A stretch of DNA of 64,000 bases. Source: Octopus sinensis. Taxonomy: Eukaryota. The stretch covers positions 57,164,001 to 57,228,000 of the forward strand of contig NC_043013.1 in assembly GCF_006345805.1 (NCBI RefSeq), read 5' to 3'. The translations under genes and the position numbers were made by a program. Positions 28,509-42,908 of the stretch are shown piece by piece; within the stretch, counting starts at the first letter, position 1, and every line of letters begins with the position of its first letter. Below the pieces are notes generated by a model. The model saw only the letters and a list, made by a program, of their open reading frames with translations. It did not search any database and had not been told where the DNA came from.

Positions 28509-28662
28509 TACTATTATTATTATTATTATTATTGTTATTATTATTATTATTATTACTATTCTTCTTCTTATTATTATTACTATTATTATCATCATCATCA
28601 TCATCATTATTATTATTATTATTATTATTATTATTATTATTATTATTATTATTATTATTATT
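28509..28662. repeat. (TTA)n microsatellite, tail/target of fragment E
   Basis: Direct reading. Confidence 0.95.
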
Positions 28663-28942
28663 GCCTTTGTACAGCTTCTAATGTTGTTCACTACCAGTGA
28701 ATAAGATAACACCTCTTATTTTTCGAGCACCCTCCGGAGTATTCGAGCGGTTCCAAACAGTGCCGATTTCTGCAAGTGCTCCAAAATTATTGAAGCCCAT
28801 ATTTTTCCATGTACTTCAAGGTTTTTACTCACTGTTCCCAGGGCTCTGACAATTATTGGTACTATTACCACCTTTTTCATCGACCACAACAGCTTAACCT
28901 CCCCAAGCTACCCTGTCATATCTACCGACTTTTCTTACTTCC
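28663..28942 (-). mobile_element. R4/Dong 3' fragment E (family 3)
   Basis: With small frameshifts the minus strand reads KVGRYDRVAW-VKLLWSMKKVVIVPIIVRALGTVSKNL..LEHLQKSALFGTARILRRVLEK*, an RLE C-terminus. Short UTR then (TAA)n at 28509-28662. Confidence 0.8.
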
Positions 28943-29026
28943 TTATTATTATTATTATTATTATTATTATTATTATTATTATTATTTATTATTATTATTA
29001 TTATTATTATTATTATTATTATTATT
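28943..29026. repeat. (TTA)n microsatellite between copies E and A
   Basis: Direct reading. Confidence 0.95.
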
Positions 29027-39780: not shown

Positions 39781-40056
39781 ATAATAATAATAATAATAAT
39801 AATAGTAGTAGTAGTTAGTAGTAGTAGTAGTAGTAGTAGTAGTACTAGTAGTAGTAGTATAGTAGTAGTAGTAGTAATAGTAATAGTAATAGTAATAGTA
39901 ATAGTAATAGTAATAATAATAATAATAATAATAATAATAATAATGATAATTTTAATAATAATAATAATAATAATAATAATAATAATGATAATGATAATAA
40001 TAATAATAATAATAATACTAATAATAATAATAATAATAATAATAATAATAATAATA
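39781..40056. repeat. Compound (ATA)n/(GTA)n/(ATAGTA)n tract between copies C and D
   Basis: Direct reading. Confidence 0.95.
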
Positions 40057-42837
40057 GGTATGAAAAGGGAGAGGTATGAAAAGCGTGTTAGATTTTTCAA
40101 GGACAACAACATGTTCAAAAATAACACCAAGAATTTTTACAGGAAGATAGGAAAAACAGCGTTTACTGCAGGGTCTGTACCATCAAAAGAAGAAGTGCAG
40201 AGATTTGGGAATAAAATCTGGGCAGAAGAAAAAACACACAACGAAAAGGCCCCCTGGATTGACAGAATATCTACTGAACTGGACCCCTTAGAAGAGCAAA
40301 AGTGGGAGGGTGTCAAGGTAGAAGATATAAGATCTGCTCTCAGGAGGTCAAGCAAATGGAAGTCTCCAGGAAAGGATAAAATTCCTAACTTCTGGCTGAA
40401 TGCCTTCCCAGAGAGCCATGAACTGCTAAGAGAACTGTACAATGATGTTTTGCAACACCCTAGTAGGATGCCTCCTTGGCTAGTTAATGGGTTAACATTC
40501 CTGCTTCCAAAAAGTGAAGAAACAAATGAACCAAAAAACTATAGACCCATAACCTGCTTAACAACTATGTACAAAACACTAACATCTGTCCTGACGGAAT
40601 ATACCTATAGTTTTTTAACAGACAGCAGCATATTCCCTAATGAACAGAAAGGATGTAAACGTGGATCCTACGGCTGTAAAGACCAACTACTCATCAATAA
40701 GATGATCTTAGAAGATTGTCACAAACGACACAAAAACTTATCAATAGCCTGGATAGACTATAAAAAGGCTTTTGATAGCCTACCACATAGCTGGATTAGG
40801 AAATGCCTTGAAATGTATAAGATAGCACCAACTCTGCGAAACTTCTTGACTGTAAGTATGAGATCATGGAGAACCACACTAACTCTGAACAGTGACAGTG
40901 AATCCCTAAATGCTGGTGATGTAAAAATTTCGTGTGGCATTTTCCAGGGTGGCTCACTGTCACCACTCCTCTTTTGTTTATCCTTAATACCTCTCTCAAA
41001 GCTGCTCAATGATGCGCAGTACGGGTATAAAATGTTTGATAAAAATATAAATCATCTCGTTTACATGGATGATTTAAAGCTCTTTGCAAAAAATGACCAA
41101 CAACTCAAGGGCTTACTAGCGATAGTCAAACAATTCAGTGACGACATCAGAATGCAATTCGGCCTCGATAAATGTGCAATGGCTACCTTTATCAAAGGAA
41201 AAATGACAGAAACATCTAACGTTAACCTTGACCAACAGAATGTCATAAAAGCACTAGACCCAGCGGAGAGCTACAAGTACCTAGGGATAATTGAAGGGAA
41301 CGGAATAAGGCATTCAGAGATGAAGGAAAGGATCAGGAGAGAATGCTATCGAAGAGTGAGAGCAATACTCAAGACAGAGCTGAATGCAAGAAACATGATC
41401 GAAGCAATCAATGCATTAGCTATACCAGTCGTGACTTACAGTTTCAATATTGTTAACTGGTCAATTACTGAAATATGTCAGCTCGACAGAAAAATAAGGA
41501 AACTGTTGACAATGCATAGAATGCACCACCCTAAGGCAGATACAGAACGACTCTATCTGCCGCCAAGAAAAGAGGGAGGCCGTGGTCTTTTGCAACTGGC
41601 AATAACAATGAAGATTGCTACAATTGGCCTAGACATCTACCTGAAAAACTCTGAGGACTGGATGCTAAAACTTGTCTCAAAACATGAAAACAAGAAAGCA
41701 TCATACTCAGTCACAAAACAGGCAAAGGAATATCTAAGTGAATTCCGAATACAACCAATTTCGGAATTAGAGATAGATATACAAGAAACAAGCACAGAAA
41801 AAGCTAGGCGCATGAAAACCCGTGCCAAAACTGCGGCCTTAGATATTCTGAATAATAAATGGCAAGAAAAACCTCTCTATGGCAAATACCCAAAGAGAGC
41901 GAATAATGCAGATATCGACAAAGCCCTGACCCATCAATGGCTAATGGCCTCTGGCTTAAAATCTGAAACAGAGGGGTTTATCATAGCAGCTCAAGATCAA
42001 TGCCTACCAACAAGAAACTACCAGGCCAACATATTAAAGATCAGAAGCAGTCCAACGTGTCGTGTATGCAAGCAACAAAATGAAACCATTGACCATGTGG
42101 TCTCCAAGTGCAGTCTTCTAGCGCCTACAGAATATCTCAACAGGCACGATAGAGCTGCACAATATATTCACTGGGTAATCTGTAAAAACCTGGATTTGCC
42201 CCATGAAAAAAACTGGTGGGAACACAAACCACCCCCAGTGCTTGAAAATGACCACATCTCACTCCTCTGGAACTTCACCATTCAAACTGACAGGAAGATA
42301 GATGCAAATAGGCCAGACATCATATTGAAAAACTTCAAACAAAGAACATGCCTCCTCATTGATATGACTGTCCAAATCGATATAAACGTATCTGTCAAGA
42401 CCTACCAAAAACTGAGCAAATATAAAGATCTTGAAATAGAAATCAGCAAAATGTGGAAGCTGAAGACTAAAACAATACCTGTTGTCATAGGTGCCCTGGG
42501 AATGATAGCAAAAGGGGCTGATAGCTACCTAACTCAGATACCAGGAAACCCCAAAATGGCAGAAGTTCAAAAGATAGTTCTCATGGGAACTGCTCATATC
42601 CTACGCAAAATACTCTCTATGTAATCTCAAGGTTTAAAACAAACATAATTTTCGGTTAAAAAAAAAAAAAAAAAAACTTTTTTTTTTAGACATTCATTAG
42701 TACAACATCCCCACCCCCAAATATATGGCACACTAGGCATAACAACAACATGAACTTCCAACCCTGTTGTCTCTTCAGGTCTCAGGGTGAGACTTGGAGC
42801 CAACTTGTACAAATATAAAGCAAAAGTCAAACATAGA
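40057..42837 (+). mobile_element. R4/Dong-clade non-LTR retrotransposon, copy D (family 1), 5'-truncated, ORF still open
   Basis: RT motifs ([38 protein letters not shown]), CCHC knuckle CRVCKQQNETIDHVVSKC and restriction-like endonuclease RPDII..LIDMTV..K..KY. 3' UTR 42625-42837 is followed by (TAA)n at 42838-42908. Confidence 0.93.
40060..42624 (+). CDS. RT / zinc-knuckle / RLE polyprotein of copy D (854 aa from first ATG after the TAA tract; lacks N-terminal DNA-binding region)
   Basis: Uninterrupted frame in the ORF track (39727-42624). The first ~111 codons are 3' UTR of copy C plus microsatellite. QGDS motif reads QGGS and there is a 1-codon insertion (LYLPPRK), so activity is doubtful. 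Confidence 0.7.
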   Translation: MKRERYEKRVRFFKDNNMFKNNTKNFYRKIGKTAFTAGSVPSKEEVQRFGNKIWAEEKTHNEKAPWIDRISTELDPLEEQKWEGVKVEDIRSALRRSSKWKSPGKDKIPNFWLNAFPESHELLRELYNDVLQHPSRMPPWLVNGLTFLLPKSEETNEPKNYRPITCLTTMYKTLTSVLTEYTYSFLTDSSIFPNEQKGCKRGSYGCKDQLLINKMILEDCHKRHKNLSIAWIDYKKAFDSLPHSWIRKCLEMYKIAPTLRNFLTVSMRSWRTTLTLNSDSESLNAGDVKISCGIFQGGSLSPLLFCLSLIPLSKLLNDAQYGYKMFDKNINHLVYMDDLKLFAKNDQQLKGLLAIVKQFSDDIRMQFGLDKCAMATFIKGKMTETSNVNLDQQNVIKALDPAESYKYLGIIEGNGIRHSEMKERIRRECYRRVRAILKTELNARNMIEAINALAIPVVTYSFNIVNWSITEICQLDRKIRKLLTMHRMHHPKADTERLYLPPRKEGGRGLLQLAITMKIATIGLDIYLKNSEDWMLKLVSKHENKKASYSVTKQAKEYLSEFRIQPISELEIDIQETSTEKARRMKTRAKTAALDILNNKWQEKPLYGKYPKRANNADIDKALTHQWLMASGLKSETEGFIIAAQDQCLPTRNYQANILKIRSSPTCRVCKQQNETIDHVVSKCSLLAPTEYLNRHDRAAQYIHWVICKNLDLPHEKNWWEHKPPPVLENDHISLLWNFTIQTDRKIDANRPDIILKNFKQRTCLLIDMTVQIDINVSVKTYQKLSKYKDLEIEISKMWKLKTKTIPVVIGALGMIAKGADSYLTQIPGNPKMAEVQKIVLMGTAHILRKILSM

Positions 42838-42908
42838 ATAATAATAATAATAATAATAATAATAATAATAATAATAATAATAATAATAATAATAATAATA
42901 ATAATAAT
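42838..42908. repeat. (TAA)n microsatellite after copy D
   Basis: Direct reading. Confidence 0.95.

Follow-up and report, generated by a model that had tools for sequence, protein, structure and literature searches.

The TAA specificity of the retrotransposon Dong was reportedly published in 1993 and 2004. Dong and the Dong-like elements of the R4 clade carry a reverse transcriptase (RT) and a restriction-like endonuclease (RLE), lack N-terminal zinc fingers, and insert in (TAA)n (PMC7998251, PMC3812793), a target also given for Dong elsewhere (PMC3774820). Their hosts are insects, molluscs, and cnidarians (PMC7998251, PMC3812793). At the N-terminus, Dong-like elements have been described as carrying a Myb/SANT-like domain of divergent sequence (PMC7998251), and a 5′ hepatitis delta virus (HDV)-like ribozyme frees the RNA of Bombyx mori Dong when it is co-transcribed with (TAA)7 upstream (PMC3774820). 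Here, a 64,000-nt stretch of the Octopus sinensis genome (contig NC_043013.1, positions 57,164,001 to 57,228,000 of the forward strand; hereafter the window) was analyzed, in which positions 28508-42908 hold six copies of RT-RLE retrotransposons lacking long terminal repeats (non-LTR). The region is very probably a pile-up of six independent insertions, contributed by four co-existing lineages of Dong-like RT-RLE elements with a single open reading frame (ORF) and chained through TAA tracts.

The closest known elements are Dong (B. mori, GenBank L08889), DongAg, DongBg, and Dong1/2 of Darwinula stevensoni, all of the R4 clade. Like Dong, the window elements encode RT, CCHC, and C-terminal RLE in one ORF of ~1200 aa, and the TAA strand is the sense strand of the element; unlike in Dong, a 5′ HDV-like ribozyme and a Myb/SANT-like N-terminus were not demonstrated in them. 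With R2 (PDB 8gh6, 9dou, 9nl3) they share RT, CCHC, and a PD-(D/E)xK endonuclease alignable over ~740 residues, target-primed reverse transcription (TPRT, presumed here) at a repeated, sequence-defined target, and a structured 3′ untranslated region (UTR), represented here by a candidate stem-loop. R2, however, has an N-terminal zinc finger plus Myb and a single 28S rDNA site, whereas the window elements have a microsatellite target and tail. Other microsatellite-specific elements are Waldo in (ACAY)n, Mino in (AC)n, Kibi in (TC)n, and Koshi in (TTC)n (PMC3812793). These are R1-clade elements with an apurinic/apyrimidinic endonuclease (APE), whereas those of the window are of the RLE type.

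Arrays that regenerate their own target through the tail are formed by SART/TRAS in the (TTAGG)n of Bombyx, HeT-A/TART in Drosophila, MoTeR in Magnaporthe, and Zepp in Chlorella. Each new copy regenerates the target or primer sequence, so that copies lie head to tail in one orientation and often belong to several families. Such arrays lie at or near chromosome ends, replace telomerase in Drosophila, and mostly use an APE endonuclease or none. The initial annotation of the window had likened the present array to these telomeric ones. The likeness extends to mechanism only: the array is interstitial, as that annotation also said, and is bordered by 28 kb and 21 kb of ordinary non-telomeric sequence; it lies neither at a chromosome end nor in telomeric repeats, and its TAA target differs from telomere repeats. 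There is no hint of a host function for it. No prior description of multi-lineage Dong chains was found in the literature searched, which is not proof of absence.

The copies were delimited by self-BLASTN, by TBLASTN with the window ORFs, and by TBLASTN with full-length outside relatives:

28663-28942, minus strand: copy A, lineage 3, an extremely 5′-truncated stub that keeps an open frame of the last ~62 codons and a short 3′ UTR
29027-31352, minus strand: copy E, family 1, 5′-truncated at about residue 536 of a 1237-aa relative, with the 3′ UTR at 29027-29238
~32037-32429, plus strand: copy F, lineage 4, a decayed stub with the last ~95 codons (with stops) and a ~100-bp 3′ UTR
~33154-37108, plus strand: copy B, lineage 2, nearly full length, with a 5′ UTR remnant at 33154-33260 and the 3′ UTR at 36939-37108
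37127-39779, plus strand: copy C, family 1, older, 5′-truncated, with frameshifts and a 198-bp deletion that takes out the CCHC knuckle
40057-42836, plus strand: copy D, family 1, young, 5′-truncated at about residue 390, with the 3′ UTR at 42625-42836

The plus strand thus reads F...B-(TAA)6-C-(TAA/TAG)n-D-(TAA)n and the minus strand E-(TAA)n-A-(TAA)n, and the BLAST mapping agrees with the order and orientation first proposed. The initial annotation had also counted six RT-RLE elements in 14.4 kb. Six copies are indeed present, but RT sequence occurs only in B, C, D, and E, A and F being 3′ stubs without it. TBLASTN with B, D, and seven relatives as queries revealed no further copies in the remaining 49.6 kb of the window. 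With six copies within 14.4 kb and none in the other 49.6 kb, the clustering is not a matter of chance.

BLAST identities divide the copies into four lineages, namely C, D, and E (family 1), B, A, and F, which upholds the earlier estimate of at least four families. A, B, D, and F are mutually 33-53% identical, and each is nearer to some outside relative. The nearest relative is P0049 for A (57%) and P0073 for F (43%), while A and F are each 33-39% identical to B and D. The ORF of B (33261-36938) spans residues ~1-1234 of the 1237-aa relative P0007, with 64% identity over RT-RLE; it is interrupted at least three times (at least four frames) and retains the YMDD, CCHC, and PD..D..K motifs. B and D are 65% identical in nucleotides and 53% in amino acids. 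Within family 1, D has an open frame of 855 codons (40057-42624) with intact RT (YMDD), CCHC, and RLE motifs, and E has a single in-frame stop (TCA>TGA near 30830). D and E, which lie in inverted orientation, share 99.0% identity across 2.3 kb, and C is 94.6-94.8% identical to both. Truncation, frameshifts, or stops have left all six copies dead, and the active masters are elsewhere. The nearest protein among 5.8 billion sequences is only 64% identical, and the window elements therefore represent new families. Relatives number more than 2,500 at E <= 1e-10; the named ones come from a coral, a psyllid, and a beetle, and most matches are ~4-kb contigs with one ~1200-aa ORF. The 3′ end of family 1 had 0 exact matches in the metagenome contigs scanned.

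The family 1 copies start at three distinct internal points, C about 130 nt upstream of the start of D and E about 450 nt downstream of it. Because these truncation points differ, the three copies represent separate insertions rather than duplications. An origin by duplication, whether tandem or segmental, or by unequal crossing-over at TAA tracts could be invoked since C, D, and E belong to one family, since the inverted 99% identity of D and E over 2.3 kb could reflect an inverted duplication, and since TAA tracts could mediate unequal exchange. Not only the truncation points but also the flanks of C, D, and E differ, however, A, B, and F belong to other lineages, and the largest repeat unit shared is a single element. 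Neither self-BLASTN nor BLAST of the unassigned pieces revealed any pair of copies with common flanks outside the tracts. Tandem duplication was rejected on the differing truncation points and lineages, and an origin by duplication or exchange in general is very unlikely.

The copies are connected or flanked by the following tracts:

28508-28662, minus strand: tail tract of A, (TAA)n with 75% TAA units and TGA/TAG/GAA variants
28943-29026, minus strand: tail tract of E, which doubles as the 5′ flank of A; 27 TAA units, interrupted by a single 1-nt indel
32430-32611, plus strand: tail tract of F, 60 units, 93% TAA, 4 TGA
32612-33153, plus strand: spacer from the F tail to B, holding two decayed TRR-periodic tracts
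37109-37126, plus strand: (TAA)6 linking the 3′ end of B to the 5′ end of C
39780-40056, plus strand: tail of C and 5′ flank of D, 277 bp, impure, 62% TAA, with TAG, TAG-TAA blocks, and a GTA-phase shift
42837-42908, plus strand: tail of D, (TAA)23-24, wholly pure (23/23 units)

The window is AT-rich (GC ~0.36) and rich in microsatellites, and no host exon of useful length was found in it. Tandem Repeats Finder and a regular-expression scan of the 64 kb placed all TAA tracts of at least 5 perfect units within 28508-42908; the two minus-strand tracts listed above read TTA on the plus strand, and the four plus-strand ones read TAA. Outside the array there were one TAA-rich tract of 33 bp (975-1007), a (TAG)17 at 51813-51863, and a few short TGA-type tracts, in keeping with the initial remark that long TAA tracts are rare elsewhere in the window. 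The six tracts sum to 788 bp, which is long for a single ancestral trinucleotide microsatellite, and this total excludes the two decayed TRR tracts. The latter (32776-32823 and 33047-33142) consist of a TGA/TGG/TAA/TAG mix and look like TAA tracts decayed via A>G changes. The link first drawn between F and B is correct in order, but the gap at 32612-33153 holds these two decayed tracts. The 164-bp and 212-bp pieces between decayed tracts in this spacer may be extra stubs consisting of a 3′ UTR only.

The sense strand of all six copies runs into (TAA)n, and orientation matches tract polarity throughout. C, D, and E end alike at the 3′ side (...AAACATAG|AATAAT), the shared 3′ terminus of family 1 being ...AAAGTCAAACATAG, followed by AAT AAT.... 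At the 5′ side, the junctions that abut a TAA tract are TAA|GGTAG in C, TAA|GGAAG in A, and TAATA|GGTATG in D, all of which fit TAA(TA)|GG. B is preceded by a decayed TRR-type tract ending ...AATAATAA|GCCGAC, and F by a short (CAA)4TAA stretch only. In family 1, tail purity differs with the age of the copies: D and E have nearly pure tails, whereas the tract following C (94.7% identical) is 62% TAA. D is the youngest copy by ORF integrity and identity to E. Its old, impure tract on the 5′ side and pure tract on the 3′ side are expected if D hit the old tail of C and brought or made a new tail. The 5′ junction of D (40057-40085) also shows a short local duplication, GGTATGAAAAGgga GAGGTATGAAAAGCG, which is consistent with a template jump or microhomology as reverse transcription ends.

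The same tracts could be read as the remains of one long ancestral TAA microsatellite that was hit repeatedly and cut up, the tails adding nothing and not being re-used. Every inter-element tract is contiguous with possible ancestral remnants, no junction proves tail re-use, and the decayed TRR tracts in 32776-33142 attest to old tract material at this locus. This explanation is nevertheless rather unlikely, as the tracts total 788 bp even with the decayed ones uncounted, and as a 3′ tract of 100% purity next to a D copy with 62% TAA immediately 5′ is unexpected if D had split one old tract. Moreover, short-read contigs of relatives end in TAA runs right after a fixed 3′ UTR end, as for a tail borne by the element. 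We infer, as the initial annotation did, that each insertion leaves a TAA tract serving as the next landing site; tail purity, the summed tract length, and the differing truncation points support this.

Chains joined through TAA tracts, first noticed in the window, recur in other assemblies. Dong-like coding segments and TAA tracts were mapped in eight relatives on long contigs (L001-L008), with 10-kb flanks. Same-orientation, TAA-joined chains were present in five of the eight, with 3 to 7 copies of clearly different lineages (L001 and L005 in ENA assembly ERZ25066847, L002 and L003 in ERZ25067903, and L008 in ERZ25066843). Together with three shorter contigs (L012, L035, and L071), mixed-lineage chains were found in at least four other assemblies. 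The L008 chain includes tiny 3′ stubs resembling A and F; in L001, (TTA)n precedes a minus-strand copy beside the plus-strand chain, as in the window; and L012 is a 3′UTR-(TAA)n-copy-3′UTR-(TAA)n-copy chain with two different 5′ junctions. An interrupted TAA tract lies at the 5′ end of L006. L004 (coral Oculina patagonica, within an intron) and L007 (psyllid Diaphorina citri) each hold a lone copy flanked on either side by a TAA tract. For each of the four window lineages, TAA tracts are also present on the contigs of its closest relatives. When 80 further metagenome loci were surveyed with (TAA)>=4 as the tail criterion, 20 of the 45 copies with a C-terminus had a tail, and 16 of the 25 tailless ones were on contigs ending <300 bp past the ORF.

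These loci bear on whether the window array is an assembly artefact in which reads of dispersed copies were mis-joined through TAA microsatellites. TAA tracts and near-identical copies such as D and E are classic causes of mis-joins, and the 5′ junction of E is atypical. The same architecture, however, was seen in several short-read contigs and, for at least three other assemblies, in contigs of megabase scale, and element-specific truncation points meet the tracts cleanly. A mis-assembly is thus highly improbable.

Regarding the encoded protein, B and D match Pfam RVT_1 and, weakly, zf-RVT. The elements have a single ORF in which RVT_1 is followed by a CCHC knuckle and a C-terminal nuclease of the PD-(D/E)xK type (PD...D...K), with no APE domain. 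In an alignment of 27 full-length relatives, the invariant positions included the YMDD-region residues, a C-x2-C-x8-H-x4-C knuckle (C1050, C1053, H1062, and C1067), and an RLE signature (PD1136, D1151, and K1163/1167/1170). No invariant Cys or His was found before position 505 in these relatives, indicating that an N-terminal zinc finger is absent. The C-terminus of the relatives also weakly matched the L_protein_N nuclease family. A conserved N-terminal block, KWTREEYKEV...IWR...NKLANVRRDI (W...W...NKLANVRRDI), is present in B and was modeled by AlphaFold as four helices (pLDDT, 94.7).

The top matches among solved structures were R2 proteins, extending across RT to the C-terminal nuclease (D residues 87-828; E = 3e-29); R2 ranks first only because no other RLE clade has solved structures. 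Identity with R2 itself was rejected, as there is no N-terminal Cys/His motif, the flanks are TAA microsatellite, and no rRNA was found in the window. The elements are Dong-like and most probably belong to the R4 clade, an assignment based on architecture and target. As to the target, all six copies have 3′ TAA tails, a 5′ TAA tract is present in A, C, and D and decayed in B, and the relatives agree; this matches the (TAA)n specificity of Dong/R4 elements cited in the initial annotation and stated in the literature (PMC7998251, PMC3812793). That another RLE clade (R2, NeSL/Utopia, CRE, or Hero) acquired TAA specificity independently is unlikely. Such an origin would be compatible with R2 proteins being the only named structural relatives found, and with the tails of distant metagenome relatives (<40% identity) that end in (ACCG)n or (TATG)n, since target switching occurs. 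It is at odds with the lack of R2-type N-terminal zinc fingers (no invariant Cys/His before 505) and with the match to published Dong-like elements in target, in range of taxa (coral, insects), and in having one ORF of ~1200 aa. Among the distant relatives (30-35% identity), L041, L057/L058, L061, and L080 end in (ATT)n, (TATG)n, (ACCG)n, and (AAAC)n, which suggests target switching among microsatellites within this RLE group.

A conserved stem-loop was identified in the 3′ UTR, ~35-75 nt upstream of the tail, in D (42767-42805), C (39710-39748), and E (29058-29097, minus strand). It is also present in L010 (3090-3127), and RNAalifold predicted 15 pairs, of which 4 show compensatory changes when family 1 is compared with its nearest outside relative (64% protein identity). 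The stem-loop is a candidate recognition or binding element for the RT.

No window copy has an intact 5′ end, and B retains only ~107 nt of the 5′ UTR. Two 5′ UTR families were recognized in relatives. The first is highly conserved in six full-length relatives (L001:14810, L002:15212, L003:14418, L005:12948, L006:9723, and L032:395); it begins GUCCUGGGUA, 0-5 nt from the upstream TAA tract, and includes a CUGUGG/CCACAG helix in which compensatory changes occur. This region may form a ribozyme or serve as a promoter structure, but does not fit a simple HDV-like fold. The second family (L002:5712, L003:9530, L024, and L026) starts GGCUCUC directly at the TAA junction. Its sequence allows an HDV-like core to be drawn from +1, with P1 GGCUCU/GGAGCU (first pair G-U), P3 ACC/GGU, L3 UGCUCGU, P1.1 GC, J4/2 CUAA, and a ~100-nt J1/2 insert. 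HDV-like descriptors, either free or anchored at the TAA junction, gave as many matches in shuffled as in real sequence. The core is thus a lead only, no better than chance, and no ribozyme is claimed.

On these grounds, the following mechanism is proposed. The element protein would nick the (TTA)n strand of a TAA microsatellite, and the nicked DNA would prime reverse transcription of the element RNA from the end formed by the 3′ UTR and (UAA)n, that is, by TPRT. Reverse transcription would often halt early, yielding 5′-truncated copies down to 3′ stubs. The new copy would then sit between the remainder of the upstream tract and a tail of new plus old TAA units, which splits one tract into two and enlarges the TAA target of the locus. 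Any TAA-specific lineage inserting later would tend to land beside earlier copies in the same orientation and build head-to-tail chains. We infer nicking and priming from the TPRT model for RLE elements and the published specificity of Dong, and the re-use of tails as targets likewise.

Several points weigh against this reading. No TAA tract adjoins the 5′ end of E (31352). The minus-strand pair E-A lies head-to-head with the plus-strand chain F-B-C-D, which needs either a second tract of opposite polarity or a rearrangement or inversion, neither of which is explained. At the level of single junctions, tail re-use is indistinguishable from the subdivision of one pre-existing tract and subsequent microsatellite expansion. 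Clade membership is judged from architecture and target. With respect to the published features of Dong, no relevant Rfam match to an HDV-like or other ribozyme was obtained in the window or in L001, L002, and L004. Neither HMMER against PDB nor Pfam nor Foldseek linked the conserved N-terminal block to Myb/SANT. Every match from Foldseek had E>2, EF-hand proteins came out best in the profile search of PDB (E≈0.03), and the Pfam matches were few, scattered, and single-member, from unrelated families.

Other features of the window were noted around the array. The pieces at 31353-32036, 32612-33046, and 42909-43400 gave only low-complexity BLAST matches against the window and all fetched loci. 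In the spacer between the 5′ end of E and F, a tRNA-like sequence, GGTCCAATGGTCAGGG...GGTTTCGATTCCCAGACCGGGC, occurs at ~31540-31640; it suggests the head of a tRNA-derived short interspersed nuclear element, was not called by ARAGORN or Rfam and has no second copy in the window. An 11-bp tandem repeat, ACACATAAAAC, is present in 8.8 copies with 100% identity at 42963-43059, 55 bp past the D tail. A (TCA)n/(ATC)n-type repeat block, (TGA)n on the minus strand, lies 1.4 kb past the downstream end of the array (44257-44545) and could represent a decayed TAA-type tract of minus polarity; no Dong-like coding remnant was found beside it. In the upstream 15 kb, the short duplication GGACAAACAA was seen three times (3479-3498, 10319-10338, and 14872-14890), and these sites are probably three copies of an unrelated interspersed repeat.

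A broader proposal concerns the role of the tails in genomes. Dong-like tails might be a main source of long TAA microsatellites here and in related genomes, acting as shared, self-multiplying landing pads, with islands that are seeded once, grow in a rich-get-richer manner, and host many competing lineages. The head-to-tail order might also have a functional side: transcription from upstream copies could read through elements that lack a promoter, and a 5′ ribozyme could release them, so that a chain would be a polycistron-like expression unit rather than a graveyard. We regard this proposal as possible but doubtful.

Given the known target specificity, chaining is the expected behavior of this kind of element, and the current understanding of these elements is unchanged: the families are new, but the kind of element is known. 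The locus adds four new Dong-like lineages and a conserved 3′ UTR stem-loop, together with the conserved 5′ UTRs of relatives, for studies of TPRT and ribozymes. It bears on the origin of long TAA microsatellites in invertebrate genomes, and since such regions break assemblies, recognizing them aids assembly work. TAA tracts may also act as "safe harbours" that keep elements out of genes. The array is an example, repeated across genomes, of a microsatellite-specific retrotransposon that probably makes its own target and thereby gives rise to local multi-family islands.

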